Positions 7,001 to 39,361 of a stretch of DNA of 64,000 nucleotides are shown piece after piece (position 1 is the stretch's first letter; every line of letters starts with the position of its first letter). Source of the DNA: Lepidodermella squamata (lineage: Eukaryota > Animalia > Gastrotricha); assembly GCA_047495785.1 (NCBI GenBank), contig JBLDXI010000004.1, positions 682,001-746,000 on the forward strand, read 5' to 3'. Both the position numbers and the translations under genes were made by a program. Below the pieces are notes generated by a model, which worked only from the letters and a program-made list of their open reading frames with translations, searched no databases and was not told the DNA's origin.

Positions 7001-7053
7001 CGAGATGCGGGCATGCCGACTCGGCTCCGCCTCGTCAGCATGCCCGCATCTCG
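7001..7053. repeat. GC-rich hairpin (20-bp arms, 19/20 match)
   Basis: cgagatgcgggcatgccgac ... gtcagcatgcccgcatctcg. Confidence 0.75.
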
Positions 7054-7133
7054 TGCTACAAATCTCAGAAAATATAAAAGTCTGGGGGTCGAAGTTTTGG
7101 TAGGTACATCGAAAATACTCCGGCGCTGCAGGA

Positions 7134-12770: not shown

Positions 12771-12871
12771 TCTGTGAAGAGCCCTAGCCTCGTTACCCAA
12801 CCCAATCGTACACCAACGTTTCAACACAAGCGTTGCATATCGGAAGTATTATATTTTTCATTCGTGCGAAA

Positions 12872-13595: not shown

Positions 13596-16500
13596 CATAC
13601 GGGCGCCGCCGTTCACAAAGTCGAAGGAAAAAAGATCCCATGGGTCGAGCATTGTTCCTCTATATCACCGCGTAATAGTGAGCGTAACATGCTTGAGTTT
13701 ATTTTCGCCGGGCGTGAAGAAATTTTCTCTAAGTCAGAATATCAGAATTTCGGGAGATTGCGCAAAATTGTGACTGCGCATAAGTCCGCTATTCTGCTAC
13801 CGCCGACAGTTTCCGCTGGTTGCGATGCGCGTCGTGAAATTTGCGCAAAATATGCGACTTTCCGTTTATAAATCTCTGATTTCGTTCACATTTTGATTCT
13901 CATTATTTAATTACCCAACTTATGATGCAATTAAATTAAATTATGTCATTAAAAACTCAATTGTTGAAAATTATTTAATATACTTTCAAAAACTTGATGT
14001 AATTAATAATATTAATCGATATAATGAATGAAAAAATTGCATCAAAAAACGAAATGAATTTTTACGAAAAAAAATAAAAATTAGATAAAATATATCCGAT
14101 CATATTTTTAGAAATTATTTTTATTTTTTTTTACATTTTTGCGATATATGAAAAGTATTCGGCTAAAAAACTAAAAAAACGGATTTTTATTCTTTCTTTG
14201 CGGTAGTTTCGACACTTTCCATTTTAATTTAAATTTCCCGATGTTATGTTGACTGATGAACAGCGTCGATTTTCAGAGCCTGAGATTTCAGTCGGCGGCC
14301 GTTACCAATTTTCAAAATTTGTTCAGCAACATTATACGGGTTTCATGTACTTGCTGTATTTTTCTTGTTCAAAAATGCTCCTGTGTGAAGATATCATTTA
14401 GTGATCAAATAATATTTTACTTCGGTATGAATTTTTCACGGCAATGTTATCGAGTTATCAAGAGATTTATCAACATCCTGTTATATTTTTTCCAGGTTCA
14501 AATATCAACAGAAAAATTGCACCGCAGTGGAGTGGCACGAATTTCATTACAAATAGAGAACTTTCAGGAATTTATTGGTTTTGTGTTTTTAAACGCTGCC
14601 ATCTTTGCCGCGGACTCGAATTGGTTCTTGCCAGCAGCATGAGTAGCAGAAAGTCGCTAGTTTTGATTTTCGTTCAATTTTTCAGATGGCCGAGGCGACA
14701 GGTGACTGTCTGAAAAAAATTACTGAAAAAAATTGGATGGAATTTTTTGGCAGAGGATAATTCTTACGGATTGGCGATGGAATGATCCGAATGACAGCGA
14801 TGAGCCAAAAATCCTATGAATGATCCCATCCCTGCGAGATCGAAATAAATCGCCCTAACATTTGCTTTCGGCAGTAATTTCCTGCCATCAGCCGAGGGTG
14901 TTCTATGCTGATTTCTTCGCCGGAGATGGGCGATCAATTTGGTGCCTGGCTGGCGAAATTTACACGAATGTTCTCATTAATTGTTTGCGTGAATGACTTG
15001 AAATGTGAAATTTTTTCCTTACGCATTATTCAGAGCTGTTATTCTGCGCGAGACAGGCGAAAAAACGTAGAATGAATTAATATAATGAGCAATCTTTGCG
15101 GTGGAAAATTATTATCAGAAGGCTGTGAAAACAAGGCTGAAGTTGTCTTTAATTTTTCACAATGATAATAGCGCGCGCAGGGTGTTTTATTTATCGTATA
15201 CCTGCGGCTTAAAAGTGTGATATCCGAAAAAATTTGCCATTCAACGCGATCTCTCGCGTTAGTTATTAAAATTCAAAATATTTCGTAATGTGACTAAAAT
15301 CATCTGACATGACGATATCAATTTTTCTCGATTTTCCCCCGAGTTCGATTTCTTCCGTAGGGGCAAACCCCTTTTATGCACCCTATTTTGCCCCTTGAAC
15401 CGGCAGAATTTTACGGTGAAAGATTCATGGCGATGCGAGTAGTCTCTTTTTTACTGTAATTTTTTGAAAATATGAAAAACCAAGTCGCCAGGTTTCAGTC
15501 AATTTTGGTTGTCGGATGAAAAAACACATCGGTCGGATGTAAAAAGTTTTCCCCGCGCGCAAATTTTTGCGAGGTTGATAAATGGAGCAGAAAAAAATGG
15601 GGAAATCCCGCCCCCTGGAGGAAGAAATTTATTACTAGCCGAAAATGTATATATCCATCTCTAATAAATTTGCCGGAGATCAAAAAAGCGCTATACTGTT
15701 GAGAGCATGGTTTCGGTGAAATTTTGTTGCTGTTTCGAGCGGGGCGAGGCTTTGAACAGGCCAAAAAAAATGGAAATCATTTAAACTGATGAACTAATGA
15801 TGGATGAAAAGTGGCAACATTTTCAAATACCTGATATGCAGCTGTTAGGGATGGAAGGAGAAGAAAAAACATCGAACTTTATGTATTAGCCGATATAATT
15901 CGACCGATAAAAATCGATGTTTAGGCGCGGTACTAGGTTCCTGGCAGTATTAAGTTTCCCCATATTACCAGCCCGGAAAAAAATAGATTTGGGTATGAAT
16001 GGAGATCGCGCCTGGAGAACACATGAAAAATAGTGTTTTCATTGCTACGGCACAGTTACTAAATATTGGGGGAAAAGCCCGAATTTCTTAGGAAAATAAG
16101 AGGAAAATGAGTGACAATTTTTTTGAATTGAACTAGAACTTGTTGTTCGCAAAGGGTGTTCACGTTACGGAACAACTAGCACTTTAAATGCGAGTTTTTC
16201 CGCAGCGTGATAGAGTGAGTGAAGAATGTGTACAAAATACGGAAAAATACTGCCCGAAAAGAATGTAAAATGAGAGACAAAGTCTAATCGTTACGGCACC
16301 CTCGCAATAACAGGCTTTTTAGGTGACGTCATAGGCATGTGGAACGATTATTGTGATTTGTTGTATAATCTGGACACGTAATGAGGCGATCTTGGCTTTA
16401 TTATGGGTGGTTATTTTTAGAAAAAAATCCGATTTGCCGGTGTGGCGAAAAATGACGAAAAAGCGAAACGAGCCCCGGTCCATTTACGTAGATTCGAAAA

Positions 16501-17031
16501 TAATCAACTAAATTACTATCTGTTTTTCGCCTGGTTGTCATTACTGCTTTTTTATCCGAATCTTAAATAAGGATCATCCTAAATTATTCCAGTCTCGCAA
16601 AAGTTGAGGGAAAAATTACATGAATTGTCTGCCAATTTAAAAAAAAACTCGACAATAATACTTGCGATTCACAACAGTACAAACTGTATACGAGGTCGAA
16701 ATATCAGTAATCAATTCCCCTAATAATATCAAATAAAGCCGAATAACTCGCAAGGGAATTTAAAATTTTAAAATTTTAAATTAAAAAAATCACGCCTATA
16801 TACAAGATTGCATTTGCGCTGCGAAAAATTTTCAATTTCATGACGCTTTCTTTCATTAGTTGTATATTTTAATGAAACACGTGGTATCATAAAACTATGG
16901 TACATAAGTAACTGATTGTTTGTGGCCCTAGATAGCACTTGAATATCTTGAAAATCGGATTGCTGTTTCTTTATAACGCCTTTATAATAACTAAATGCAT
17001 TGTGTTTCAAGTAGTAAGTAGCACTTTGAAC

Positions 17032-17302
17032 CGCGCGCTGATTGGTCAATTTATTGTTGCTATGACTCCGGGATGAAACAATTTAGTCGTGCAATCCACT
17101 AATAAATTATTTTCTATTTATGCAAAAAATGACCTTGCCACACCCTCTGCACGGTTTCCATTGACCACGAGCGTAAACCCCATAATAATCGTAGCAATTT
17201 ACTGCGGCAAAAAACACTTGTTGCAAAAAATTCAATGGATCGCACAACCAACATGTTTCATCCGGGAGTCATAGCAACGATCGATTGACCAATCAGCGCG
17301 CG
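17032..17302. promoter_or_regulatory. Imperfect palindrome with outward-facing CCAAT-GCGCG motifs; possible divergent promoter
   Basis: cgcgcgctgattggtcaat..gctatgactccgggatgaaaca vs tgtttcatccgggagtcatagc..attgaccaatcagcgcgcg. Confidence 0.45.
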
Positions 17303-17323
17303 CCCAGAAATTCTACTATTTAG

Positions 17324-18012
17324 CTCAAGCACAATGTGTCAAACAAAAATTCTCGCCAAAAGAAGGAAGAATTCGCCAACACTCGTCTACCTCAGATCAC
17401 ATCTCAAGGCCGAATGATAGCTTTTAAGCTAGAGTATAACCATCAGCTGACTTTTGGACAGGTAAATATATTTTCAAAGGGCTATTTTGCGATATTTATT
17501 TATATCAAATGGGGGGAAAAGGGGAAAGGCTATTCAATTTTGACAAGATTTTTTATTCGCTATTAAGATTGTATTCATTTTTCCTTAACATATTATTATG
17601 TCAAAAATTATAGGAATGCGATGTGTATAATTTCGATTGCGAAGACGCGCCAACTGTTCCCACGAAAGTTGTCCAGCACGAGCATGTGGCGGAGCTGACC
17701 GAGGCTCACAAGGATCGCCTGCACAAGCAGGTGCGTTGCATCCCCTGCTATGACCGGCTAAGGCTCGATCTTGGCTTCTCTGCAGAGGAGGCGGGCAAAA
17801 AATGTCGCAAGGCGACGCAGCGGTGCGTCACTTGTCCCGGAAGGCCGGGCATTTGCCGCCAATGCTGGCCGTACATCGAAAATCACGGCGGGGTGAGTGG
17901 GCCAGCGGAACCGGGGCCAGCGGAGTCAGGAGAACCAGTCCAACCAGTGGACAAGATGGAAGAAGATCGCGGAATTTCCTTGGAGCGACTTTTTGCCTTA
18001 TGCGACGATTAA
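17324..18012 (+). CDS. Spliced gene (start uncertain) encoding a piggyBac-type C-terminal cysteine-rich domain
   Basis: Exon ..RMIAFKLEYNHQLTFGQ|gtaaat, then tag|ECDVY..H..RCIPCY..G..A.KK..RCVTC..PGICRQCW...H; no DDD core nearby. Confidence 0.6.
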
Positions 18013-19174
18013 TTCTTGTTATAATTTATTGCGCTATATTATTATTATTATTATGTGATGATTAGGCCCAAAAAAGCAAAAAAATCAAATGCAGAATAGT
18101 TTCACCTTGAGTTAACAATTCTAACTTAGTACGGCAGATATTCGGCAAGAAATTCCAGTTTAAACCTCAGATTTTTATGCAAATTCAAGCCATATAAAAT
18201 GAAGAAAAATTATACTAGTTTGCTGATGCTTAGGACTTATAAATTACCTGTTCGCCGCTTTGAACGAAATAAATAATAAAAATCTTATCATCGCCTAAGA
18301 AAAAAAGTCGTTCTAAATAATCCCGCGATCTTCTTCCTTGTTATGGTTTGGTGATAAAAACAAAAATCGTTGAGCGAATTGGCCTGAATTAATGTTGCAA
18401 AAAATAAATGTGCCTAATCGAAGGTATAAGCCCAAAATCTAACGTATTCAATCACTGAAAATAATTTGGTGAAACTTGTGGAGAAAAATATATCGACAAC
18501 AAGTGAGAGGAAATATTAAACAATTAAAATAATTTTAATTTGAAAATACTAAACAATTTAAAAATAATTTTGGAGACAGTGATAGTAAGAGTTATCAAAA
18601 TTGCGAAATTGTACGTTGATATAGGGAACCCCCAGCTCTAGTTCGAAAACAAGGAGAAACCCCGGCTTTAAAATCTTCCTAGTTCGTTGTTTTTCAGCAT
18701 GCAAAATTCAGATTATTCTACAAAAATTTCAATTTCTTCAATTTAATAGCACGTGATTGAAACGTGAAAAAGCGCGCCGTTATAAGTGCAAGAGAACAGC
18801 AAGAGAGGCTAGGTATAAATTTCTTAACGCCAAGAAAATGTGACATATTCAATTAAAGGATTTTTTATATTAAAAAATTAAACGCCGTTGCGGGTTCCCT
18901 GTAACGTGAGATTCGTTGTTATTCCCCTGCGTTAAATAAATTTGGTACTTTTTCTTATCATGTGTCTCGAACTGGTGGTGCTGGTAGTAGCTGTTTTCAA
19001 ATTACAGAGCTCTTAGCGTTGCGCAATATAGGCTCGTCCTTTGTGGCTGATGTTACGTGTTTAGTGGAGGCAGAGGAATTTTAATATTTTATCTATTTTT
19101 GGCGTCCTAATTTTCACCATGATATTTGCTGCCTAAAATCGACGCGGCTCCCGCAACGTTCATGGCGTTCTCAA

Positions 19175-19441
19175 AGAGTTCACATTGTTCTCAGACTTCG
19201 ATTACGCCGTCGCCTTCGCTTGTCCCATTTTCCGCTGATTTTTCAATCCTAGAAATCTTAAAATTCCACGAAGTGGCTTTCTCTCGCGGAAGAGTTCACA
19301 TTGTTCTTGGACTTCGATTACGCCGGCATTATGCGTCCTAATTTTCGTCCGATTCCGTGGAAATCGTAAAAATTTTCAACTCGACTGCAGCCTGCATGGA
19401 AATCTGAAAAGAGGTCACATTGTTCTAGTCGGTGATTACGT
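19175..19441. repeat. Three degenerate ~115-bp tandem units
   Basis: aagagttcacattgttct..cttcgattacg recurs at ~19175, ~19290 and ~19409. Confidence 0.65.
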
Positions 19442-19692
19442 GCATATCTCTATCGTCGTTTTTAGACTAGCGGAGGGTTACGGAGGGGTTCGTTAATGCC
19501 AGCAGTTGCCATCTCCTTTTTTGAGGCCCTGCTAAGACAAATTTCGATTACGCAACTGAGCGAGTTTAAAACTTGGAATTTTCATTTTTCATGTTTTGAC
19601 ATCAAGCAATGTAAAACTTATACATTCATTTTCCACGTCAATTCTTATTTCCTATTTTTTTCATAATTGGTCACACCGATTTTACCGTTGGA

Positions 19693-21070
19693 ATGGAATC
19701 TACCTCCAAATGGAATTTTCGCGAAGAAAGTCTCTTAATTGACGAGCTAAAATCTCAGCAAGTTTCGGCGGCTACGATAGGAGCAGAGCTCGTGCAATTC
19801 GATTTGAAGTCGATTACGTCCATACTCAACGATGCTGGTAGCGCTAAAACGAGAGAGCAAGTGGAAAGAAAAGTTAATTGGTTGAAGGAAGAATATAAGA
19901 GAGAAGAGGCGAGAATGAAGGCGACTGGAGAAGAAGCCTCGACAATGAGGAATTACGAGCGCCTGAAAGATATCTGGGGTAAATCGCCCGCCTGCCTCCC
20001 ACCCAAGATTCGGCGTGACTCCGGAGTTATAAATGTTGATCCAGATCTGGAAATCAAAGAGGAATTGGTTGATCCGCCGAGTTTACCCGAGCCACCGTTC
20101 AAGCGTGGGAGATCGCTTTCCGGCGGAGGAACTTCAAAGCGGCAAACGTTGGAAGTCGCGACAGCCACGGCCGGCTCAAATGTCAGTCTTACAGCTGCCG
20201 CGAAATCGACTGCGTCGACTTCTACGGCAAGCCGCGACGTTCCAGCTAGGCCGCGCTTAAAAACGAGGAAAGACTACCTCAAGTCCCAAATCGCGGAGGA
20301 GCAAGTAATTTGTAAGGAAATGCTCGAAATTGAACGCGAAAGTGTTCGTGAAAAACAAAACCGTTTCAAGTTGGAGCAAGCTAAAATTGAGCAGGAGGAG
20401 CGCCGGATTAAAATTGAAGAAGAAAGGTATAATTTTTGAATACAAAAATTGAAATTTTTTCAAATACATAAACATTCAACATTTATTTTATATAGAATTT
20501 TTATGAAAACCGAGTTGTTTTTTTGAATATTATTCAGAAAATTCGGCTTGATTTTAATAATTTTTCAGAGTTTTTTTTAATTAAAAGTGAACGCAAAAAA
20601 TAGACGCTATCTATTAAATTCGATTAAAATTAAATTCGATTAAATTATTAAATTAAATTCGTAAAAATTCGATAAATTAAAAAAATGGCCGATGAAATAA
20701 TTGATGATCACACGGAAATGATTTTTGTATACTATGCAGGTTACGGCAAAACAACGAGATGATGCGGCAGCAAATGGAGCTGAATCGACAGCAGCTTCAG
20801 CTCAGCCAAATGCAAGCCGCCGCTTTACTTCGCATGCAGATTCCAGCTCAACAATACGCACCGCCTCCGCCACCACCAGCCGAACCACAACCGCGGCCAC
20901 CTGGCCCCGTAGTCTTGAATCCGACCGGGTTGTTTGCTCCGAACCCGACCGGGCCCTTTGCTGTAAATCAGCCGACCGGAACATTCGCCCCGAATCCGAA
21001 TATCCCTTCCTCTTTAAATCCGGGTTTCTTTCAGCCATTACCTCCGAATTTTCCTCAGTGGCGTCAATGA
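19693..21070 (+). CDS. Harbinger Myb/SANT-like DNA-binding protein (exons 19693-20426, 20740-21070)
   Basis: W..EE..LI ... KTREQV..K..WLKEEYK trihelix pattern; coiled coil; in-frame GT-AG intron; Pro/Gln-rich tail. Confidence 0.85.
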
Positions 21071-21278
21071 AGAAATTCGAAAATTTCAACTGCGCTTGAC
21101 TATCAAAAATTTCATTTTAAATATTTCCCTCTTCTTGATACATAATACGCTTTAATTCGATAGAAGCTGAAAAAATTCATTGCTATAACCATTGAATTTA
21201 AGGTCAAATAAAGCCAAATAAGTAAGAATGCAAGAATTGGATACTTTTATTCATGTCGAAAATCTTCATTTTCAATTT

Positions 21279-22694
21279 TCATTGGTGTCCCATGATATCA
21301 AGAAAATGACGAGAAAACGCATCTCTAACACGACGGCCTCGCTCGTGAAATAGCCCCTCCAGCTGTCGTAGAGCCGGGTTACCTGGCGGCATTGGAATCA
21401 TGATCGGCTGTACACCAACGATTTGTTGCGCCCATTGCTCAAAGAAGGGTTGATTCGATCTTTGGCAATAGTTGTGTAGCGTGGTTGTAGCTGCGACCAA
21501 GTCGGCCTGAAATTCGACTGACATAGCATTCACGACCAGAACTCTCTGCCAGCGACCCTTCCACCATCCTATAACCTGTTCGTCCCACCAACGTGCTGCT
21601 TTATGGCTGTTGTTGTAAAAACGCAAATTCGGATTCGCCTCGACCTCAGCTTCCGAATAAGGAGTTAATAACCACGGCAATTGAGGGTAAGCCCTGTCTC
21701 CAAGGACCGCAATAGGGACTTCTTCCCCGGAGACAATCGAGCCAAAATCAGGGAAAAGGTCACAGCCTTGGCGTTCCGCTCGGATGAACAAGGATGACCA
21801 GGTCAGCATTCGAGCGTCATGAACAGAGCCAGCCGAGCCCGCGTAGACATCCAGAAAGCAACCGTCATGTCCAGCCAAAAGCTACATATCAATTATAGCT
21901 TATTAATTTTCAAATATAATAAGCTATAATTACCCTCCTCTTCCTCTTCAGTAAAATTCTTCTATATTTTTTTTCATTTTAAAAAAATTTCTCACTGTCA
22001 ATTAGTGACTATAAAAATGCATAAAAATCTATGTAAAACGGAGACAAATTTCAACCTGAACTGCGATTGAATAATTTTGCTTCCGATCGAAATAATCGGC
22101 AGGATTTTCGACAGGACCGTTAATTGCGACATGTGAGCCGTCGATTGCGCCGATACAGCCCGGAAAATTCGTACGATTTTGAAACCCTTCGATTGCCCTG
22201 GCAAGTTCGGCTGCATTTGAGGGCAATTTAACCAGTTGATGAAATAGGTGAGCTATAATCGAGCGGCAAAATTCGTGAACTGTTAAGCACAATGTAGCAG
22301 TCGACATCCCGAATAATTCACCGACGGTTCGCATTTCACCATGTGTGGCAAGGAACCACAAAGCTGCTCCGACCCGGTGCCAAACAGGAAACGCCGGCCG
22401 AAAAATTGTATCCTCCCGATACAAGTCATTGTATACAACCTCAACCAGATGATTATAGGCCCCTCGATTCATTCTAATGTTAGATATCATCTCCTCATCG
22501 GTGAAATTTAAAAAAATTTCATTAGCATAAGTTCGGCTCCTTGCTCGCGTCCAAAACCGTCGACTCACGATTGATGAAAATTCAAGTACTAACCGGCGTC
22601 TCCTATTCAAACTGAGTCTAAACATTATTTTTCTCAAAAAACGCCTCATTTTTGCAAAGAAACAGCGCCAAATTTCATAGTGTGAAAAATACAT
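21279..22694 (-). CDS. Harbinger DDE transposase (exons ~22694-22056, 21881-21279)
   Basis: GAIDGSHV, YSIAVQ|LL, GSVHDARML, LGDRAYP..WLLTPY, EQVIGWWKGRW; 174-nt intron keeps frame. Confidence 0.92.
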
Positions 22695-25114
22695 AAAAAC
22701 TTTATTTTTTCAAAGGCTCAGTTGCATAATCAAAATGTGTCTTAACGGAGCCTAAATTAAGAGTGTAGCAACCGATGGCGTTAACGAACGCCTCCGTACC
22801 CCTCCGTCGTGTAAAAACGACGTATATTTAGCGGCCGATTACGTCTCGTCAAATTTCATCCTGCTTTTATGCGTTGAAATATTTAGGCTTTTATTGTCTG
22901 CATGCTGTCTTGTTTCTCTCCCACTCTTCCTCTCTCTCTCTCTCTCTCCGAAGAATATTTCCACGAATTTTATTTCTTTAGAGAAGTTTAATAATTAATT
23001 TCAACAAAAATTTACAAGGCGCGAATCACCAAATGTATATAGGTAACTATGTATAAACGAGGCTGGGAATGCGGGAGAAATTAAGCGGAAATCAGAGGGA
23101 ATATTTGAGCAATTTTAGTAAAATAGCTATTAAAATTACACGCCCTAATAATATTTAAAGACAACAACAATATCACCCCAGTCATTATTCCCAGTCTTCA
23201 GACCTCGCCAGCGTAGCTTGATTGGAAAAATGCGGCTAATCTTTCGCGGCCATAACGAAAATTCAGCTTCTGAAACATTTATCAGATTGAAGAAAGCCTT
23301 TCTTTCCATCTCGAACGATTTCGCCAACCGATGATGGGGTCTAAGGAACAAAAGGCATCGCGAAAAAATGATTAGTTCCATATATAGGCAATATAGGCAA
23401 ATATAGGCTCATTCTGAGGCCATATTTGAGGCCAGTAATTTTTTTAAATTATTTTTAACAATTTAGGGTTTTAATTAAAATTTAAACATGTTTTCATTTA
23501 TTTCAATTTTTCTAAAAAACAGAAAAAATACCTGGGGTTTATGTCGTGAAAATTTGCGAAGCGGCATGGCACAGAAACACGCCCTGCCTTCAGGTCCGCG
23601 CCTTCTGATTTAGTCGCCGGTTTACTTAGGATCGACGCTATTCGTAGGGCTATTTGATTAATTACAGAATAAATAGGTCCACGTGCTACGGTTGGTAAAT
23701 TGGGCGGCCGGGTGTTTTTACGAAGTGCGCGAATGGCCTCTTTCATTTCACCATCGCCATAGTGCGTGGTGCCGAAAAATTGAGGGGAAGGACAGGGTCT
23801 CGGGCGTAAACTATGTTGGTTTATAACCATGGAGTTGAAAAAAATGTATAAAAATCGCAACAAACTTTCAAGTTTTGCAAAATATTAGTTTGGCTAGTTC
23901 AGTTGAGTTAATCGGCGTCAGACTTTCATGCCATTTATATAACCAGCGATTACAAGTCTTGGTGACACGTGCGTGGCAACAACACGTAGTTATGATGGCA
24001 ATTCCTGTAATCAGCCTATAAGAGCATCGCGCCCTAAATTCGCCCACTTCATGAGGTTTTCCCCACTTTGCCAACAATTATATTTTGCCCAATAATTCAC
24101 ATTTTTAGTTTTGAACCGATTTTTCTGCCGAATTATGGCCGAAATTTGGACACCAAGTGCTTTACAGCAGTTTTTTGCTCACAGTGGGTGGCCGAATTTA
24201 CGAGATGGCCGAAATCAGGGTTGGATAGAGTTTTTGAAGTAGTTATTCTAGCAACAAATCCTATACTTTAATGAGTTACCGTCATTAATTCTTTTTTTGA
24301 GGTGGATTTATGAGGTGAAATCGAGTTAGAAATTGTGAATTTCTACAGTTGAGCATGGGAGACAAAAAGTAAGGAATATGTCACATCCTTTTTTATTTCA
24401 AAATTCATGAAAAATCGACGGAAATTGACATTGGGTGTTGATGAGAACAGAGAGAAATAGTTTTCGATAGGACTAGTTCCAGCTTGCATCATTTCAGTTT
24501 ACGGCATGTCGCTTCTTAAGGGTACATTCAGTGTAAGCCGGTTTGTAAGACCGCAGCCAGTTAGTCTCCAGGTCGACGCATCCGCGGAACAAATAGTTGA
24601 GCAGTATTCCATTCGGCGACCAAAATCTAGGAAAATGAAAATTTATTTCGTGAACAATTCAACATCGAATAATTTTAGGTTTTCCGTTCAAATCAAGTAT
24701 CAATTTGAAAAACAGTAAAGAAATGAAAAATCGAGACTTCCCAATAGTTATAACCCCCTATACTTTACGTCAATTAATTCTGAAAACTGATAAATCGCAA
24801 GCGTCTCGCTTAGCTGCAAAGCATTGTTAGACAATCAACGCTTAGTTTCGAATTAATCAGCTGTTTCTCAGCTGACGATCGGTTTCAGAACATCGCAATT
24901 TTCGCCAAGTACAATTAGCAAAGAATTTCTCATGTCCGATCGAAGGAAACGACGATCTCAGCCTCGCATGCCGAGGTTGAAGGGGAGTCTCCAAATTTGC
25001 AAATAAATCTTCCCAATCGCGTGATTATGATGGGCTTGCCCTCAGCCTGACAAGCGACAACATACAAATATCAGCCAGTACCTATAGCAGATACGTCATT
25101 TTGACCCTCTACAG

Positions 25115-25629
25115 GCAAATTTTCGCATGACAAGTTGAGTTTGCTCGATTTTAGGGCGATTCTCGCCGAAAATGACCAGTTTATTCCCGAATCGTCACGC
25201 TTGGTTGCACATCTCGCGGATTGCCTAGCTTTTGGCGCTTTACCAAGGTGTCCGAGTTGTAAAATCGGCCGCCTGATGCTCAGTGATGACGCGAAAGGTT
25301 ACCAATGCCAGGGTGATCGAAGCGGCGGCGAGCTATGCCGATGTTCCTTCGTAACCCGAAACCCGATGCGAATTCTCATGAAGATTCCAAACGATTATCA
25401 CTTCGAAGGAATAGAACTGTTCTCCAACTACAAGTTCGTTGACCGAAGTCGCATTTTCGAGGATAGCCCAGCCAGGGGCGTATCCAGGCGGTTGTTTTGG
25501 TTGTTAAACAACTACCAAAACGAATATCGAAAAACCCCTCTCAACAACAACTTCCCGATTTTCGATCTCATTCCTTATTTTAATGCAAATCCAAGGTTCA
25601 AATTATGCAAAAATAATGCAAAATCGTAA
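25115..25629 (+). CDS. Exon encoding a PADR1 (PARP1 Zn3-like) domain
   Basis: ILAENDQ..LADCLAFGALPRCPSC..GRL....YQCQG......CSFVTRNP matches the PARP1 pattern ADGMxFGAL..CxxC.G.L...Y.C.G....C; acceptor ctctacag. Confidence 0.8.
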
Positions 25630-27150
25630 CGTGAAAATAGCTAGGGACAATTTATTGAGCCATTTTCAGTTTGCTTTTTAAAGATTTCATACAGAAAAAT
25701 CCAGCTACATATAACATGCGATGCGCGGATGGGTTCAAATACCTACTGAAGTTGTCTGTTAAAATTGCCGAATACCCTTAAATATCGGACGCTAGGATTT
25801 GTATTTTTTTGAGATTTTATCTGTTTTGGAGAAAAGCAACTACCAAACCGAAATCCTGGCTACGCCCCTGAGCCCAGCTACGCCGAAGCGAGCGAGGACA
25901 AAGTTTCCAGCCTCGGACCCTGAGCTTGAAGGTAGGATCCCAAATTTCGGGTTTTTTCGGTTATTTTTTTCCGCATATTTCCTCACGAGAGAAAAGTAAT
26001 TAACGAAAAATTCCAATTTTTTCCGAATTTCGTTAATCACCAGTGAAAATGAGAAGAATGATGAATTATTACAATAATTACCTGATAAAAATTTCGTAGT
26101 CATGTTTGCGCGCCATGGATCTTCCTATCCCTCGGATTACCCGCTTCCTAGACGACCGATGCTCGTTGTAAACCCGTCGACTGTAATTCCGCCGCTTCGC
26201 TGGCGATGAAACGCTTGCAACTTCGTGCTGATCAGGTTGAAAACGGATTAAACACGTCGAGGCTGTCGGTTTCGAATTCGGCGAGTTCCGGCGGTTAGAC
26301 CAGAGTTAAATAGCGTGCTTTCGAGTGTCTCATTTTTCGAATAGTTGGTGACTCGCTATTACTTGACGTCGATACTGAAGTTGCGATAATTCTTAAATGC
26401 GGATCGAGTGTGAACGATGGGAACGATGGGAACACTGAGCCAGTCATTCGTGAAGGAATTCGAGCAAATGTCTCCTTTGTACCAGCTTGGCCATAATCGC
26501 CGCCAGCGACATCGGAATGAAGCCAGTTCAGATCGCTGTATTACGTTCGTTCATGCGAACTGCCTAAATACGGAAAAATAAATGAAAATTAGTCAAGTAG
26601 TTAATTTCTTTGATTATTATGATTAAAAAAGTGAACCATGTAAATTACGTAAAAACCTACACAGAAAAATTATTCTGTTTTTAATTTGGACTGTTCTCAG
26701 AAAAACACAAAAATAAAAAAATAGCATATCCGAAAATAAAAAAATTAAGAAAAAAAGAGAAAAAATGCTAGGGATGGTATACTATATTTTTTACGTATTT
26801 CGATGAGAAAAACTAGTGATATTGAAATTATGATTTTTACCGCCTCGCTCCCGTCGACATTTAAATTTTAAGCGGACAACAGGAAGGGCTGTGATCGCAC
26901 ATAAACAAATTTCCAATAAAAAAATTTTTATATATTACTCATTGACAGTATTAACCTCATCAGCTCAATAAAACCAACCTTGGCATTATCTTTTTCGCGA
27001 TGTTATCGGGCAAAAAATCGGGGGTAGTGCTGCGTCTGTCAACATCTACGTCACATGGAAAGCGTAGCCAATTTTTTTCGCTTGAAAATGGTTATTGAGG
27101 AAGCGCAAGGGCCAAAAAATCGAGCTTCGTAGAAACCCGAAACTCGAACT

Positions 27151-27226
27151 ACCCTAACCCTATCCTTATTCCTGAATCCTAACCAAACCTTAAACCTAAC
27201 CCTAACCCCTAACCCCAATTCCTAAT
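27151..27226 (+). repeat. Degenerate (CCCTAA)n telomere-like tract
   Basis: accctaaccctatcc...aacctaaccctaacccctaacccc. Confidence 0.7.
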
Positions 27227-28167
27227 CACAGTATGGCTAAAAATCACGATTTCATGAGAAAAAAATATGTATAAAGGTTATTTTTCCATTAAATATGAAA
27301 TTCGTAATTTTTAATCGACCAAATCATCAAAAAACTATGATTATGCAGTCATTTTTCGAAATTAACAGAAGTTCCTATAGAGCCATGTTATTTGGGAAAT
27401 TTTTGAGTTGGATTTTATTAGGCTCGCACCTTAGGGTGGCAAATCAAATCCTTTTCTTAAAAACACATCGCCACATCCAGAACTTTGCAATTCACATTTG
27501 AAATGAAAAAACTCTGCATCAATTCTTCCAAAATATAATCGCCTAAAAAATCATTTAAATCCGAACCCCCTTTTTGTATGAGGTACGCTTTTTAATCTCA
27601 GATGTAGGGCTCTATACTGAGCTCTATATCTAAATCCTATTAAATAACCCTAATTTATTCCTATATGTTCTGAAGCGATAGAACCGGGGCGATAAAATAA
27701 TTTGTTCGAAAACAACGATTAGACAATAAAAAACTATTATTACTACTTTTTATACGACTACTTGTATTATAGCCTTGAGAAAAATCTGGAAAACTGGTGA
27801 AAAGTTTCTGATGAGTTTCTTGGCAGAAACGAAACGCAATCTCAGCGCAGCCCGAAAACCGACTCATTTCGAAAGATTAAATATTGAAAATCCAATCGCT
27901 AAAATTAAGAAAAAATCTGTCAATAATTTAGTGCTTTTTATCGACCAAATTTTTTTTCAAAATTAATCCTCCTTAATAAGCTGTTCTGAGATTGCGTCAA
28001 ACTTGCCATCACCAAGTTTTGCAGCTAAAATGACTATATTTTTGTTAGCCAATGCGCAAATGCCGTTTTCCTAAAAATGACCATAAATAAGTGGCGTCGA
28101 GCAAGCATAGTTTACTAAAATTGCAGTGCGCATCATTTAATGACAGAATTTAGAGAATAGCGTAGCC

Positions 28168-28498
28168 CAGAGTTGTCCACGGGTCGAAAAATTGAGGCCC
28201 GACCGAGCCCGTCAGTAAATATCTCCAAACCCGGCCCGGCCCGTAGAAGAAAAGTCACACGAAATTAGTATTCCTTCTTCCTTTTCGATGCTCAAAAACT
28301 TCAAAGAGACGTCATTTTTACTCGAAGTTGGCATTATATTGATGTTTTGCTACGGGAATAACTTAAAATCTTACTGTCAAATTTACTGAAAGCAATTGCA
28401 AAGAAATCCTAGAAGACGGGTTTTGAAAACCAGAGGATTGGAAAACCCATACCCGCCCAAACCCGGCCCGGGTTAAACCCGGCCCGTGGACAACTCTG
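28168..28498. mobile_element. hAT-type MITE
   Basis: TIR cagagttgtccacggg / cccgtggacaactctg; perfect 8-bp TSD gcgtagcc. Confidence 0.92.
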
Positions 28499-29092
28499 GC
28501 GTAGCCAACCCTTTTAACGATGGGCAGAACAAACTAAAATCAAAAGCCAGTGTAAAAGCCACTAATGAGGATAGTCGGATCGTTTTTAGTTGGATTGGAA
28601 TGCGACATGAATATTTTAAATGCGAAATAGGAGCATATCGAAGAGTTGAAAGAATCACGTGTCCGCTAATGACCTAATTAAGGGATGCGCATTATTAGAT
28701 CATTTGCAACCACCCTGAAAACCGAATTTTTTTTGTATTCGCACTCTGAATTTTGCTGAAATTTCGATTATTGAAAATAAAGAAAAATCTACTTAAAAAT
28801 CTAAGAAGTGAATAAAGTCGAAAAAGCCTATCCGTCACGAAGTCGTTTTTTCTCCCGATAATTTTGGTACTCGCGTAATATTGCTTATTATTGAAAAAAA
28901 TATTCCTTGCCCTTGGAAGCGAATGAAATCTTAAACCATTAAAATCTTTGAAAATGGGCTGAATTTCGATAAATAATAATTCTTAACTCATCAAGGCTTG
29001 ATTACCTCATTATTCTCCAGATTCTTCAGCCTTTCAGCATTTACTATCTCTGCATCGCACGATTTGCTTAGAATTGATTAATTTCGTACCTA

Positions 29093-29494
29093 ATGGCTCA
29101 AAAGCGGCCTCTTGGTGCTGAATCGGGCTTGGAATCGAGCTCGGAAGAGCCAATAGCTGAGTCCCGTTTCCCTCTCGGTAGAATCCCCAAGGTGGCGAGG
29201 AGCACATCAGGGGCCCAGCTCAACTACTTTTCAGTGAAGCCAAGTAATCCACCCAGGAAGAATCCGATCGACCGTAACAAGCCAGGTTGCAGTGGAACAG
29301 CGCCGCCAGGAACTTCGGCTGAAGTTCCGCCACCTAGGGCCAACAATGCGAAGACGTCAAGGCGACCGGTCTCGCCAGTTGCTTCTTTAACAGAGCCAGA
29401 CTTGCCGCGTGATATGGCTCGATCAAACGCCCTGCAGAGATCTTTCCTGGAAGAAGAAGAAACGACATCATTTGATGACAACGTAATTTTTTGA
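29093..29494 (+). CDS. Low-complexity ORF; candidate first exon of the transposase or a separate cargo gene
   Basis: ATG start, GC-richer than flanks, Pro/Ser-rich, possible donor gtaatt at ~29483. Confidence 0.45.
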   Translation: MAQKRPLGAESGLESSSEEPIAESRFPLGRIPKVARSTSGAQLNYFSVKPSNPPRKNPIDRNKPGCSGTAPPGTSAEVPPPRANNAKTSRRPVSPVASLTEPDLPRDMARSNALQRSFLEEEETTSFDDNVIF

Positions 29495-30299
29495 ACTAAT
29501 TCATTTAAGCCTAAAAAATATTTACTTCACAAATATTTCTAAATTTCATGATTTTTAATGAAACGGTTTTCCCCTTGAAATATTTCATCTATCATTAAAC
29601 GCCGCAATACAGTAAAATCTGAATTTTCATCCGAGGTGGGAGAATGCAATTCTTCATTTTTCCAAAAAAATATGCGAGTTTTGCTATTTACACTCCAGTT
29701 TTCGCAATTTATAACGCATTTGGCCAACTTTCGTCGCAAATTTATCCGATCTGAAATTATAAAATTTCACAACGGAACTTGACGTGGATTTCAAATTAGG
29801 AATTTTTCAATTTTTTCGGCTTCCCTAAATCCTCCAGGGAACACCACTTTGCCCTTTTCAAATGGTGAGTATCCGTGGTCTAAAATATCTCAATTATCCG
29901 AATCGAAGCTGATTTTACAAATTTTAAGAACGTAATTTCCTCCATAGTTACTACGCGTGATGGTACTTCATGAAAATAAATCTGCATTACCCAGCCAGAT
30001 TTTTCAGGATTTTCGAAGAAGAGACGAGATTAGAATTGGAATGAATTTAAGGGTCCGACAGCGGGCGTAGCCAAAATTTTGATTACAACTTATTCCCCAT
30101 AGTTAATTAGAAAACGTGACGATAATTCGCAATGCGTTTGAAATCGTTATTGTTGCATCTAATAACTTATCATGGGCACAGTATTTCAAACGCCATTAGT
30201 CGCCTTTAGTCACATGACAGAAACAGTTGGATATATCTGATCCTAATAATGTAGAAATTAGGCAAAGTTTTCAGAGCGAATTTATCGATTTTTTTCATC

Positions 30300-30726
30300 A
30301 TGAGCAACCTCGAAGACGACGATCGCTATTCAACGGGAGATTCTGAATATGACAGCGACGAGTCCATGAGATTAAGGGCGAAAGCCAAGCGAAAAGCTGA
30401 AGAGTATGCCTTTTATCGCCGTTTGTCATGGCACAACTATAAACGCGAGAATCCTACATTAAGTAGCCACTTTGTTCCTAACAAACTGGGTATGAATTAG
30501 CTGAATAGCAGCGCTCCAAGTAAGAATTTTCACCTTATGCACTTTTCTTGCAGAAAGAAGCGCTTCGTGCATTGAGTTTATAGCCGATCGAACCGGAGAC
30601 TGGAATATGACGTGGTATATGCTTACTGAGCTAGGGAATATACCTGCGAAACGACGATATTCAGTCAATTTGGGAAAACACGAATTCAACTTCGGAGGTT
30701 CTTTTCGAAGAAAGGACTTCAATTGA
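30300..30726 (+). CDS. Small two-exon orphan gene (~120 aa)
   Basis: MSNLEDDDRYSTGDSEYDSD..; donor G|gtatga joins in frame to cttgcag|..ERSASCIEFIADRTGDWNMTWY..*. Confidence 0.4.
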
Positions 30727-32108
30727 GCTTAAGTGCTGAACCTATCTGATTTTGCCCTCAATATTTTGATCAACAGCTAATTCACCTTATTTAATTTCAT
30801 GCTTTGATGCCATTCAAGAGGTTTCAGAAATAAATTAATTCGCCTCCGTGTAATATCGTTAGCCATGGTACAGCAAGTATTATGGCACGCTTGTAAATAG
30901 TTCAATAAAATTTCGAATAAGTCTTTTTTGCAACCATGAATTTTCCGTCTGACTTTTTTCTGTGTGATCCGTATGTCATGTTAGCAATTCCAGTCGAAAA
31001 AACACAACTAGCGTGAGTGGGGATATTTTGGAAAAAACCCATGTTTTTCGAGGATTAAAATGAATTTGAATTTGTTTTTTTTCGTCCTCCTTAAGGCATG
31101 AAATGTGATGATAAAGAATATTTCGAGGATTAAAAATCAGTCTTTAATTAGAAATCGATGATTTTAGGTTTGAGTAAGGTAATTTCAGATTGACCTGTAA
31201 TGTTTGTGAATTTTACCTGATTTTTGGCGATTGCAAAAACAATTAAGAAAAGTTGAACAATGAGCGGGTGATTTTTTGCTTAATAAAAACCATAAAAAAT
31301 CAGCGCGCAAGTTTCTTACTCGGGTATCAAGTACCCTGAAACCCTCCAATTTAGCTTGGAATTAAAAATTTAAGCTTGTAATGTATCACGACCACGATGA
31401 TACGCGATGAAGCTTCTACAGCGTGTCCACAAGTTACGCAACTATTTTTTACTTGGCATCTTTTCTACAAAATCAAACTCATTTTATTAAATTAAACCAA
31501 CTGAGAGAATATTCAATTTTTTATACGCGATTTAACCGAAGAAATCAAAAATTTACCGAAGAAAACCCGGAAACCCCCGATGGTAACTGGTTCGGAAATT
31601 TTCGGTATTTTACCCGTTTGGAAATAATATCTCCGGACTTTTTTAATCCCATTAACAACTGAAATAATTCATTGAAGTTCTCCTAATTTTTTCAAATTTC
31701 TATACATTTTTTGGTCATACTGTGTGACTTCATCTATTATTACTGAGTTTCTGAACCCTTAGCCGTGTATTTTCTAAGCATGCGTTACTTATGGGACACG
31801 CTGTAATTAACAAATGAAATTCGATGTATGTCAAATTGTGGATAAAAAGTTTTCTAAGGCCAGTTTTGCTTTTAATCTTGTTTTGAACACCCTATACCCC
31901 AACTCGAAATTATTTACAGTGTAAAATTAAAAAAATAGTAATTACGCTGTTTGAGAGCACTAAGTAAGACACATTTAGACTCGCCGAGCAAAAATAATGC
32001 GATTTCCTGAGTAAGATGTCATTTTTAATTAAAATTTAACAAATATCAACGAATTTTGTGAATTAGAAATTTCTCCAGCAATTTTCTTAAATCCTCCAAT
32101 TTTTTCAG

Positions 32109-35100
32109 GCGACTTCTTTCAACATATTTGCAAGTCCAAAGCAGGTAAAATTGGGTCGACCTGCTACCAAGCGGTACCAGGAACACGAACCGTCTGCTCG
32201 CTGCATGAGGCGAAAGCGTCGCCTAGAAGATGGTTTGCAGTTCACCACAGACGATTTTGCCAATCGAGTTATGTGTTACCACGACAAAGCTCCGGTAGTA
32301 GGAGCCTCAGTAGAATTGTGGTTTCCTGGTCCCCAAGGAACCTACGACAAGGTGGCAAGGCGCTATGGCGCAGCTGCAGAGGAAGAAGACCCCGTGGAGG
32401 CAGCCAGAAAGTTCGACAAATTATAATTATAATTCCGATATTTTATCTCTATCCTTGTAGGCTCATACGTCTTTCAACCTCTCATGTCATGAGTGGAAGG
32501 GCGACAGAAAAAATAGCAAGCGCCCATAAAGTGGTGCGCCGAGCAGTGTTGCGAGAAGAAAAATCAAGGCAAAGCAACATGTTCGATTTAACGACCAAAA
32601 AAAACACCGCTACTTACTGCCGAGGTAAATTATGAAAATAGGATAACTAACTCAATACATTAATTTCGATCAATAACACTACGATTTTGCGCGATTTTTT
32701 CCGGAAAAAAATAATTCCAAAGATTATTCTATACCGAAATTAATTCTATAAATTTATTTTCCCTTGAGAAAAGGTAATACGATAAATCAAGAAGGTTGGG
32801 CAATCTCTTCTCATTTTCCTGAAAAAAAATCAATTTTAAATGGCTAAAATTTGTTAAAAACGCGGTAGGAACTCCACAGCCCATTGAAAATCTCACATAT
32901 TTTGAATGTCATAAACGATAATTTCGGCAAAATCATAGCGACTAATGGACTTACATTTTCAGCAAATTCTCTGATTTCAGGATGAAGAGGATAACGGCGA
33001 TTGTGGTATCGAGGGTGAGTCGGTAGAAAGCGCTTTGAGAAATGAGTCGTATGAACTGCGGCGAAACGATGAGGGAAGCGAGGCTGAAGAAATTGATGTG
33101 AAGACTGAGCGTAAGAAAGGCGGCTGCTCTCGAGATGTACGACAGATGTTGTCAACATTAATCACTGTTCACGAATTAAAGCCAGAGCATCCAGTCAAAA
33201 TTCGACTTGCTCTAGACGGTACGCCTGGCCGAACAGAAGGCACGCAAGAAATGGTTCGATTCACCATCTGCCTGCTGGATAAGAAAAATCGGCCAGATCT
33301 TGCATCCGAGCATGCGATAGCGACGTTCTTCGACACAGAATGTCACGCATCAATTGCCCATTATTTCTCGGAAGCGTTCTCGCAGGTTCGATTCTCCATT
33401 ATGATTATTTAAAATAATCCTAAAATATGCGAAAAATATATTATAGAGGAAGGTCTTCAATTCAAGGCGTGCTTTTTCCTGTGTTTTAAACATGAAAATG
33501 CGCAACTATTCATTAATTTTGCGAAAAAAAATTGAAATGGAATCAAACGTAGTATAACCAAATAATTCTGAAATTAAATAGTAAAATAATAGCTTTGTCA
33601 TCAACAATCAACAAACAAAAATCAACAAATCTTCCTGGGGGAATGGTATCATTTAACGATATTTTCAATTATACGAAATCATGAATTTTGCGAATTTTTA
33701 AAAAACACGGGAAAACTTGAAATTAAAATAAATTAATAGAACGAAAAATCGGAATAAATAAAACTAAGTAAATAAAAAAAATGCCCATCTGCAATACGGC
33801 AATATCTGCACCATCTCGCCGGATAAAATACCCATCGTCATCACCCATCACTATAAAACTAAACCAATAAAACTAAACCTCCATACAATATAAGGCAAAC
33901 TCTATTCTGAATTCCCTTTGTTTAACATCGTGTCCCATAAGTAAGTGATACAAAAAACAGAGAAATACGATTATGCTAGCTAAAATGAGTGCCGAATTAT
34001 TTTCACAAGGCCATAAAAATCTTTCGAAAAATTAAAAATGACAAGAGAATGCATACTGAGATTTAAACCCATGGAAATTTGGTTCAGCCTGGTAAAATAC
34101 AGCCGATTACAGTAGGTTACATCAGGGTTTTACGTGATTTTCCCGATAAATTTCTACTTCTTCGCTAAAGCCGTGCGTAATGAAAATGGAAAATTATCCC
34201 GGCAGGATTATTTTCAAATAATTATTAGAATTTTCTGCAAATAATTGCAAACTTAAAATTTTTTGCCAATTTATGCCCAATTTTTGCCCAAATTAAGCGT
34301 GTTAAAAGTCAACTAATACAGGTCCCAAAAAAGTATTACTAATTTTTGAAAAATTAATAAAATCACGTGTTTCAGATAAATCATCTGCAAGACCATGGAC
34401 ATGATTTTGGCGGCAACCACTACGACATCGAGGCCTACTGGAGTGCCGATGTTATGGCTGTCATTAAAGTCTTTGGAGCCGGTAGTACAAATGGCGATCA
34501 TTTTTGCCCTCTTTGTACCCAGCGAAGAAGCTCTAAAAATGACGAAGACGTTAGTGACCGCCTATTCCATCGACTGGCCGTCATGGATCAAATCATGCAG
34601 AATCCCGAATGCAACCGTAAAGGGCAAAAATATATGCCTCTTCTACGGATCCGTCCTGATCACATCCTGCCCGATCCTCTGCATATGCTCGCCCGTCTCA
34701 CTGAGACTTTGATTAAATTGGTTCGTAAATAATAAATTTTCGTGAATTTCTCATGTATCAAAAATATATGAAATTTAAGACGCTTCAGCGGCTACTCGAA
34801 CTCGGCCTGACTACGGATGCTGATCGCATCAAGAATGGGCTTGAGAGAAGGGGTGGCGGTCGGCTGAAAATTGACTACACCGAGAAATCGGCGAGCCAGA
34901 AGAAGGCTTTCAAGGTCACAGTCAAGGTGACGGGCCACACCATCGCTACGAAGGCCTTCAGCGAATTCGATTTTAAACTGGCCGATATAACTGTCGATGA
35001 CAGCTCAGCCAGGCGCCAACTTCTGGAGAAGCGAACTGTGGCGACTTTAAAGTCGATGATCGCCGAAGCCCAAAGCAGTCACGCCGTACTGAGCCGAAAA

Positions 35101-35663
35101 AGGGCCAAAAAATCAGACTATGTGGAGGCTGCCATGGACTTGGGTCTGCGCTGCAATGAGGATGACAGCTCCGCCGATGACGCTGAAAACGCCCAAGTGG
35201 TTCTGAAATCCCTTGACAATGTCATCGCCCTTGGAAAATTACTTTTCAAAGCGGTGACTAATCAAGTGAAGACATTGCCACCTGCCAGCGAATTTCGACG
35301 CTTTGAAGCGATGCTCTTCGACATGCGGAAGAAGCATACTATTTACTCGCATAGTAAGTATCACCCGCTATTTTTGACGATTAAGTAATTTATTTCTTTG
35401 CAGTGATGGGTTCGCACGTGCACAGCCATCTGGCTGCTGGCCTTGACCTCGTGGCATTGGGCACTTCTTCTATTGAGCGCGGCCATCGAGTACTCAAGCG
35501 CGTCCGCGAGGCAATGTCGACGCAGCAAACCGGCGTTGTCACTGCGATCGACGTGATGAAATACGAGAACAGGCGCCTATGCGCATTCATTTACGACAAA
35601 AAGTTTAATATTATTGTCCACGAAAGTGCCGCAGGAAGAATTATTGAACTGCAAAAACGCTGA
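32109..35663 (+). CDS. RAG1/Transib/Chapaev-like DDE transposase, multi-exon (core exons 32981-33385, 34376-34720, 34780-35353, 35404-35663)
   Basis: VKIRLALDG (D1); YWSADVMAVIKVFG..FCPLC (D2 + CxxC); GQKYMPLL..PDPLH; IYSH|MMGSHV (HxxxxH); LGTSSIERGHRVLKR (E). Same order as the RAG1 core; core exons join in phase. Confidence 0.85.
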
Positions 35664-36859
35664 TTTAATCTTCTAGTTAGTCCTGAATTCGTAACTCTAG
35701 TGATAAATGAAAGTGTAATGTTGTAAATAAATAGATTGAAATGATTTTCGGCTGAAATTCGATGTGATCACAGTTGTGTTATTGAACTATGTAGCAAATG
35801 TTAGATGACGCCCTCGATTAATATCATTTTTTTCATCTAATATTTTCTACAAATCCTTCTCATCAATTATGGCGGAAATTCAGAAACTAATGTAGTCAAT
35901 CGTGTCGCATTTCAATTGACAATGCCTCCATGACTTCGTGTCTTACTAAGATGGCGTGAAATATTGAAACTCGGTCTGATTGTAGATATACTCTTTATAT
36001 AAACCTATCAATCTTGTAGCATCAACTTTGAAGCATATCAACTTGAGAATAGTGATAATTTGATATCACTTCAAAAAATATATTAACGCAGACCGGAATC
36101 ACTCGTCTTCTGATAAACCTAGATGGTAAATTCTCATCATGATTTACCCCACTTGAGTTGATGATACCAATTGATGAATTCGAAACGAATACAGTTATAG
36201 CAACTGGACTAGATACAGACAAACATTTCAATCAAAATCAACTCACTTAAATACTTATCGACTCACGACATGGTGGCAACCTGTTGCTTATCTTCATCAT
36301 TTATGTCCGCAGTCAATCGCTCAATTCTTCAATCCTCCGCCGTATTATTGAAAGAGGTGACGATGTTAACTCAGCAGCAGCATTCACACAGCAAATTCGA
36401 TCCGAATACCAGCAGAAGTAACGCCAAGATCATTTTCAAGTCAAAGCTTTCACTCAAACTGAGCAAGAGTTATCTGAGTAGGACATCTTCTAACTCAGAA
36501 AGTCGAAATTAAGCAAAACTGTTAACGCCGACACCTAGTTAACACAAGTAAAAGACATTTCATTTCATCATTTCACCACCGATATGGGCAGGAACTTCAA
36601 AATGTCCTTTCAAAGTGTTATGGAAACTTTAAACAGCCAAATGCCAGCTAAAACTTGCGTGCAGTCACGCAGCTCGCAAATCTCCCGCCACGGGTGAAGG
36701 ATTTAATTATAAGAAAATAATTTTTTTCCAACGAATACATTTTTTTTATAACAAATCAAATTCTTTTCCAAGAGCTAATTTTATTTTGTTTTGATTTACC
36801 GCAGCCACTATTAGTGATTTGAGCGAAAATTAATATGTGAACGGCGGCGCCCGTATGAA

Positions 36860-37182
36860 TGTTTCCGCGGCAAGGCGATTTCCGTCGCGATTTTCGACAG
36901 CAAAGCGGTCCGCCACGTCGGTATCAACCTGCACCTCGCCAGCAGTCACCAAGCCGATTTCCTGACCGTTTTCAGGAGCGCCCGCAGCAATTTCGCGGAC
37001 GACAGCGATCAGGTAATGATAATAATAACGAAGAGGGTTGTTGGCACTGCCACAAACCGGGACATTTTAGGCGAGATTGCCGGTCATATAGGCAGGACTT
37101 AGAGCGGAATAGTCGCCAGCCGCCTTACCAGGGAAAAGGGGGGCGGCCGGCCTCAAGGCGCCAAGGTCGGCCGAACTATTGA
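36860..37182 (+). pseudogene. gag: LTR-A gag C-terminus with CCHC knuckle
   Basis: CWHCHKPGHFRRDC; slippery G GGA AAA at 37131-37137 followed by a GC stem. Confidence 0.85.
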
Positions 37183-39182: not shown

Positions 39183-39361
39183 ATCGGCAGCTTCCGATTT
39201 CACCTGGTGTCGATTTCGGAGGATTCATTCGGCGTTTACGTCGCCTCAATTGAGAAGGATGAATAGCCTCAGGAGGCTGTTGAGGTGTACTGTTGTTTAC
39301 ATCCTCGGACTTGTTATCTTCTCTTTCGAACTTTTTCTGGAACAATATCAACTTGGCATCG

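Follow-up and report, generated by a model that had tools for sequence, protein, structure and literature searches.

Do the exons with RAG1-like motifs near the middle of a 64,000-nt stretch of the Lepidodermella squamata genome (hereafter the window; G000:C4:682001-746000 of the 121-Mb assembly) encode a close relative of the V(D)J recombinase, a transposase of another kind, or no protein at all? A sequence-only reading had described this locus, at about 32.1–35.7 kb of the window, as an intron-split RAG1-core-like transposase with intact catalytic residues and an intact zinc site. We assign to it, with a probability of roughly 0.8, the transposase of the terminal inverted repeat (TIR) element that occupies positions 13596–36857. 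The predicted protein is an RNase H-fold DDE enzyme from the CACTA/EnSpm-Mirage-Chapaev-Transib (CMCT) clade, in which, as in RAG1 and Transib, the residues of a Cys2/His2 zinc module would be interspersed among the catalytic Asp, Asp and Glu. Of the earlier description, the intron-split DDE gene and the RAG1-type motifs stand, as does the fold, reached transitively, whereas a special kinship with RAG1 or Transib does not.

The element, its gene and the sibling copies

The limits of the element were set by alignment with two sibling copies that are 97–99% identical to it, one on contig C42 (20,952 bp) and another elsewhere on C4 (19,019 bp). The element ends read CATAC...GTATG. Target-site duplications of 2 bp were found at four independent sites: AA in the window, TT at the C42 copy and CT at the other copy on C4; the fourth site, with CC, flanks a C50 element of 5.9 kb that has only the termini in common with the window element. 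With up to two mismatches allowed, the genome contains 66 sites that match the TIR pattern, compared to zero for the reversed control. Many of these sites, roughly 17 pairs, are spaced about 480 bp apart, in the manner of miniature inverted-repeat transposable elements (MITEs). At least 15 pairs with this spacing have a TIR variant with GCCGTCG (e.g. C3:263351-263833 and C12:881826-882308) and are likely MITEs of the same CATAC-ended family.

A CATA-ended element of 14.3 kb lies 31.8 kb past the window (G000:C4:777777-792054) and could be taken for a “transposase-less” family member. Both its flanks are identical to those of the window copy, and window bases 31074–36164 are missing from it. 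This is thus the window insertion itself, carried along in a duplicated segment, and not an independent landing. The transposase gene was removed from it by internal deletions, and we re-read this neighbour as a deleted duplicate of the window insertion.

The gene was delimited by reading the splice sites base by base on the plus strand, and all database and profile searches with it were run exon by exon. Every peptide motif quoted in the sequence-only reading (LALDG, FCPLC, PDPLH, YSHMMGSHV, SSIERGH) was found on that strand in open frames, using the list of open reading frames (ORFs) and stop-to-stop translation. The gene model has six exons and five introns with GT..AG boundaries (Table 1), and the splice sites confirm that the four core exons, 3 to 6, join in phase. 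The last intron cuts a Met codon, between A and TG, that lies between the two His residues of HxxxxH. The spacings from the second Asp to the first Cys (19), within HxxxxH, and from His to Glu (20) are the same as in the aligned RAG1. Counted from the candidate start codon and with the exon 2 length of the siblings, the exons sum to 1950 nt, or 650 codons.

The two siblings were aligned base by base with the window copy. Third codon positions account for 28 of the 36 exon sites substituted among the three copies, and 25 of the substitutions are synonymous while 11 are not. In exon 1, third codon positions hold three of the four between-copy substitutions. In exon 6, about 22 nucleotide differences between the window and C42 copies result in only three amino acid changes. 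Given the third-position excess and the synonymous pattern of exon 6, the frames are therefore real and have evolved under purifying selection. The exon 6 substitutions of C42 (L012), nearly all synonymous, contrast with the remainder of the gene, which is far less divergent, as would be expected if this copy had recombined with another subfamily or had undergone gene conversion by it.

It had been noted that the upstream exon, with its end at 32624, is out of phase by a single base next to a run of nine A at about 32597–32605, and a frameshift, an assembly error or a missed micro-exon had been offered as explanations. The phase problem is true of the window copy only, which differs from both siblings by one extra C that shifts the frame by +1, seven codons from the end of exon 2. 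The run has eight A (A8, 32597–32604) and is created by substitutions at 32597 and 32604. Exon 2 of both siblings closes in phase 0 and can be spliced straight to exon 3; therefore no micro-exon is needed, and a missed one in the 356-bp intron was rejected. The extra C agrees with either of the two other explanations. An assembly or base-calling error at the homopolymer, with the window copy in fact intact, is conceivable and in our opinion rather unlikely. The extra base does adjoin the A8 run, three differences are packed within 10 bp as in a poorly polished patch, and all other frames and motifs of the window copy are kept. However, the extra base is a C ahead of the run and not an added A, and copies of this family do decay, as seen from an unrelated 4-nt deletion in exon 3 of the other C4 copy. 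The C42 copy keeps its phase through exons 2–6, the 3 nt deleted from its exon 6 leaving the frame intact.

If the assignment is right, the enzyme would bind the CATAC... terminal repeats and cut the element out, probably through a nick and a hairpin, as in RAG/Transib, and would re-insert it across a 2-bp staggered target cut. Deletion derivatives and the ~480-bp MITEs with the same ends could be mobilised by the same enzyme. Such a protein would be the missing enzyme of an element family that comprises, in this genome, the 19–23-kb copies, the 5.9-kb element and the many MITEs. We consider it quite improbable that a real CMCT transposase is only a passenger here, or that the element is moved in trans by a paralogue. 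Several further CMCT lineages are present in the genome (L005–L010; matches to PF02992 and PF06869), the element does contain unrelated passengers (a nested PIF/Harbinger element and an ORF with PADR1 similarity, see below), and the frames are broken in two of the three copies. Nevertheless, each of the three full copies has the gene in the same place; about 1.2 kb separates it from the right end, no second TIR pair encloses it, and it is conserved between the copies, the changes being mostly synonymous.

Relatives and the predicted fold

In the genome, exon 4 is represented by three copies, one partial copy and two distant paralogue types with 29–35% identity. Both paralogue types keep D, D-x19-CxxC, DxxH, HxxxxH and E. 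The L009/L010-type paralogue keeps the exon boundaries as well, including the end of exon 3 and the intron inside HxxxxH; the phase and position of the latter are common to exon 6 and paralogue L031. Exon 5 is 23% identical to the equivalent exon of the paralogue, and both end in TxYSH.

A search of 1.84 billion proteins with a profile built from exon 4 and two paralogues yielded 96 matches, to unnamed eukaryotic proteins (best E 3e-18, none below 1e-30), few of which carry source names (sponge, mussel, glomeromycete fungus). They include true DUF1280 members P0090 (2e-24) and P0039 (1e-16), retrieved by the profile at E 8e-4 and 6e-6, respectively, and proteins with sub-threshold Pfam matches to RAG1 (P0095, 9e-5, and P0044) and to DUF1258 (P0033). 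The full-length kin are about 800 aa long, and in Pfam they have only sub-threshold C-terminal SAP-like matches. Among distant full-length kin, P0011, P0017, P0024, P0045 and P0059 combine an N-terminal coiled coil with such a SAP-like motif, and P0059 is a fusion with an Ulp1 protease domain (PF02902, E 9e-19).

A second profile (A4), made from 22 long members of this kin, aligns collinearly with exons 3 (E 4.2e-5) and 4 (E 1.8e-22). The match to exon 3 covers A4 positions 314–409 and places the exon 3 Asp on an invariant GDG. For exon 6, hhalign aligned GSHV..SIERGH to YxHxLxxH..QxxEKxN of the kin (E 0.007). The three catalytic residues of the window gene thereby align to invariant residues of the kin. 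Paralogues L006, L009 and L031, as well as about 100 kin, retain the zinc-site residues of FCPLC and H-MMGS-H, and the Cys2/His2 module is predicted to bind zinc. A MAFFT alignment of the exon fragments with the long paralogue ORF misaligned exon 3 and was discarded.

The same A4 profile matches zebrafish RAG1 at E 1.3e-9 and amphioxus RAG1L at 4.4e-9, and mouse RAG1 was also matched. The alignment with RAG1 is in register for D, D708, CxxC, DALH, HxxxxH and E962. The kin sequences score higher against RAG1 than against insect Transib. A homologue search with the kin alignment yielded just 12 unnamed proteins. Language-model neighbours of exon 4, taken as a lead only, comprise Plavaka and Transposase_21 clusters first and RAG1 sub-domain clusters later.

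The fold was modelled on relative P0024 (863 aa) by AlphaFold2 with an alignment of 101 rows. The predicted local distance difference test (pLDDT) score of the model is 86.7, and it exceeds 94 over most of residues 310–770. The model was compared with the RAG1 core, amphioxus RAG1L (BbRAG1L) and Helicoverpa Transib (HzTransib) structures (PDB 6xnx, 6b40 and 6pqx, respectively). Foldseek matched it to RAG1 at E 1e-15, to BbRAG1L at 5e-12 and to HzTransib at 7e-10. VIA-align superposed model residues 314–779 on RAG1 460–1007 with Z 27.4 and a root-mean-square deviation (rmsd) of 3.8 Å over 437 residues. The Z-scores for BbRAG1L and HzTransib were 24.6 and 23.2, and those for the next folds were 12.9 (P element) and about 10 (Hermes). 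An RNase H-like core together with the zinc domain, which had been predicted for the locus, thus holds for the family via the P0024 model. The protein of the window gene would have the RAG1-type fold by transitivity, that is, from exon 4 to the kin profile and on to RAG1, and from the kin model to the RAG1 core.

The Lys/Arg-rich insert in exon 5 had been read as SAP-like. This we reject: SAP (PF02037) has no Pfam match up to E 1 on 34753–35388, and exon 5 modelled alone (a helix, a beta-hairpin, then helices) reaches a pLDDT of 55.7, a low confidence that gives no basis for such an assignment.

Several results weigh against the proposed assignment. No single exon matches a Pfam transposase model or a PDB chain (Pfam scans, phmmer vs PDB), nor does the exon-4 profile match the PDB; the RAG1 link is therefore transitive. 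Genome searches with PF12940, PF06918, PF06869, PF02992 and PF18759, which cover the RAG1, DUF1280, DUF1258, Transposase_21 and Plavaka models, never reach the locus of the gene. Beyond the source genome, neither exon 5 nor exon 6 has a significant sequence match, and the modelled relative P0024 is only about 28% identical to exon 4. The N-terminal part is short and has no recognisable DNA-binding domain: exons 1 and 2 have no counterpart in the paralogues by tblastx and no homologue in the searches made. Finally, the window copy as assembled is frameshifted and defective.

Table 1. Coordinates of the element, its gene and the functional residues in the window.
Feature	Position	Strand	Evidence and remarks
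Whole TIR element carrying the gene	13596..36857	+	23,262 bp; alignment with two siblings, flanks unrelated beyond
Left TIR	13596..13617	+	22 bp, starts CATAC; perfect reverse complement of 36836-36857
Right TIR	36836..36857	-	22 bp; pairs perfectly with left TIR
Target-site duplication AA	13594..13595 (partner 36858-36859)		2 bp; flank reading
Exon 1	32110..32410	+	open frame and donor GT at 32411; 5' limit putative; first in-frame ATG at 32205 (MRRKRR...), candidate start
Exon 2	32461..32624	+	164 nt here, 163 nt in both siblings; frameshifted here by extra C at 32595
Exon 3	32981..33385	+	pre-RNase H segment and first catalytic Asp (LALDG, codon 33215-33217)
Exon 4	34376..34720	+	second Asp 34448-50, CxxC 34505-16, DxxH 34673-84
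Exon 5	34780..35353	+	insertion region between DxxH and HxxxxH; ends ..IYSH; in phase
Exon 6	35404..35663	+	second His 35415-17, catalytic Glu 35475-77, stop 35661-63
Introns 1–3 (GT..AG)	32411-32460, 32625-32980, 33386-34375	+	50, 356 and 990 bp; splice-site reading
Introns 4–5 (GT..AG)	34721-34779, 35354-35403	+	59 and 50 bp; splice-site reading
Catalytic codons	D1 33215-17, D2 34448-50, Glu 35475-77	+	sequence reading
Zinc-module codons	Cys 34505-07 and 34514-16 (FCPLC); His 35350-52 and 35415-17 (H-MMGS-H)	+	sequence reading
AATAAA, possible poly(A) signal	35726..35731	+	63 nt 3' of stop; sequence reading only

Passengers and surroundings

The element interrupts the gag region of a long terminal repeat (LTR) retrotransposon (window 12833–13595 and 36858–39266). 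A gag-like ORF is cut at the left TIR and resumes past the right TIR with a CCHC knuckle, downstream of which a dUTPase and then a reverse transcriptase (RVT_1, E 8e-22) are found.

The block 19453–22915 was found only in the window copy. It contains a PIF/Harbinger-type DDE_Tnp_4 ORF (21279–21878, minus strand, E 2e-11) and a Myb/SANT-like ORF (19693–20439, E 1e-6), and so it looks like a nested Harbinger insertion. Another ORF in the element (25135–25629) matches the PARP1-type PADR1 zinc ribbon (PF08063, E 1.9e-9) and PADR1_N; it may be cargo or a piece of a longer gene. Pfam scans of ten ORFs, seven in the element and three in the flanks, detected no kelch or RAG2 domains.

Two observations were made upstream of the transposase gene. 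The stretch 31500–31818, about 300 bp from the gene, is similar at the DNA level (with matches in all frames) to an L010-type element (L030:2317-2645 and 6972-7285) and may represent a shared internal repeat or a regulatory block. An ORF of 133 aa (29093–29494) has a weak collinear L010-type counterpart (31 aa, 32% identity); this ORF may be a second gene that is conserved, or else an upstream exon.

An A6 run (AAAAAAGATC, window 13628–13637) is present at the left end but not at the right, some 25 bp further in than the first seven bases, and is retained in the C50 element. This layout loosely recalls the heptamer-spacer-nonamer arrangement, and the resemblance may be due to chance.

Placement within the CMCT clade

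The C(2)C and H(3-4)H pairs between the second D and E are common to the whole CMCT clade, most members of which have CA..TG ends and target duplications of 2–5 bp (PMC12730594). The motif set that suggested RAG1 is therefore clade-wide, and even a perfect set of this kind is no evidence that its bearer is specially related to the V(D)J recombinase. The window element shows these clade features, with the D, D, E triad, CATAC...GTATG termini and a 2-bp duplication. Hallmarks of Transib are a 5-bp target duplication and CAC, the latter said to be invariant in Transib and in the heptamer of the recombination signal sequence (PMC1131882). Among the Pfam models, DUF1280 corresponds to Chapaev and DUF1258 to Mirage (Majorek et al., PMC3985635); the Chapa zinc finger is a feature of Chapaev, which Kapitonov and Koonin placed inside a broad Transib superfamily (PMC4411706).

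When compared by hhalign, the clade of the window gene is closest to the group with a weak Mirage match (4.6e-18), followed by unnamed groups (1e-15 to 7e-17) and Chapaev (4e-12), the RAG1-like fragment being the farthest (2.5e-5). The Mirage label of the nearest group comes from P0033, whose sub-threshold DUF1258 match scores 17 bits against a cut-off of 33. The target duplication of Mirage is 2 bp according to the Repbase descriptions. In the tree of the region from the second D to DxxH (131 columns), the window gene, the L009 type and the 95-aa metagenomic fragment P0001 form a clade of their own (support 100/100) on a long branch. The attachment of this clade within a large unnamed family was not resolved by the tree, and the L006 type is nearer to Chapaev. 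Given the 2-bp duplications, the CAT ends, and the profile and tree results, we therefore place the gene in a new family of the CMCT clade rather than in any special relationship to RAG1 or Transib; Mirage-like elements are possibly the nearest to it.

It is very improbable, slightly more so than the passenger explanation, that the gene belongs to the strict Transib/RAG-like lineage (Transib, TransibSU, ProtoRAG) and is thus closely akin to the V(D)J recombinase, with ends that happen to diverge. The identity of motifs and spacings with RAG1 would fit such an origin, as would the fact that the kin are closer to RAG1 than to insect Transib in both sequence and structure; the broad Transib superfamily of Kapitonov and Koonin includes Chapaev as well (PMC4411706). 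These points are outweighed by the duplications, which are of 2 bp at four out of four independent sites versus the 5-bp hallmark, and by the ends, which start with CAT versus the invariant CAC (PMC1131882) and show no clear CAC heptamer-spacer-A-rich nonamer structure. In addition, neither the exons nor the exon-4 profile show direct similarity to Transib transposase or the RAG1 core, including PF12940, and hhalign relates the clade to the RAG1-like fragment far more weakly (2.5e-5) than to the unnamed and Mirage-like groups (1e-15 to 5e-18). The RAG2 model PF03089 has zero matches in the genome, and the control genomes gave zero as well. A chance origin of the motifs, in non-coding DNA or in unrelated ORFs, has a negligible probability: no exon directly matches a named family, but the profile match at E 1.8e-22, the 96 database relatives, the exon-intron structure conserved in a paralogue at 29–39% identity and the third-position excess among the copies contradict it.

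More tentatively, and with the odds against it, the window gene, the L009/L010-type paralogue and the metagenomic fragment may constitute an undescribed deep CMCT lineage that combines RAG1-identical spacing, Mirage-like 2-bp integration and cargo of more than 20 kb. If confirmed against reference sets, it would form a new branch between the Mirage/EnSpm and the Chapaev/Transib/RAG1 sides, and would provide a recently active, testable enzyme for the evolution of 2-bp versus 5-bp target-cut spacing in the RAG1 fold. As the family is young and its ends are readable to the base, it is a practical candidate for studying this spacing.

In comparison with known systems, the window gene and its element share with the CMCT clade the DDE residues with C(2)C and H(4)H, the CA..TG ends, the 2-bp duplication and relatives that fold like RAG1. 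They differ from it in that the gene matches no Pfam model of the named lineages and belongs to its own long-branch clade, and in that the element is unusually large (19–23 kb across copies) and has passengers. With Mirage, the element shares the 2-bp duplication, and the nearest profile group over the second D, CxxC and DxxH holds the weak DUF1258 protein P0033, whereas the window gene itself has no DUF1258 (PF06869) match on its exons or locus. The likeness to Chapaev consists in the retrieval of bona fide DUF1280 proteins by the exon-4 profile and in the hhalign score; in contrast, exon 3 has no DUF1280 (PF06918) match, and exons 1–3, with an N-terminus that may be incomplete, are not Cys-rich and contain no Chapa/RING region. 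With RAG1, RAG1L and HzTransib, the gene shares the order and spacing of D, D, CxxC, DxxH, HxxxxH and E, whereas the element duplicates 2 bp instead of 5 and has ends that start with CAT instead of CAC, and the sequence of the gene is linked to theirs only via an intermediate profile.

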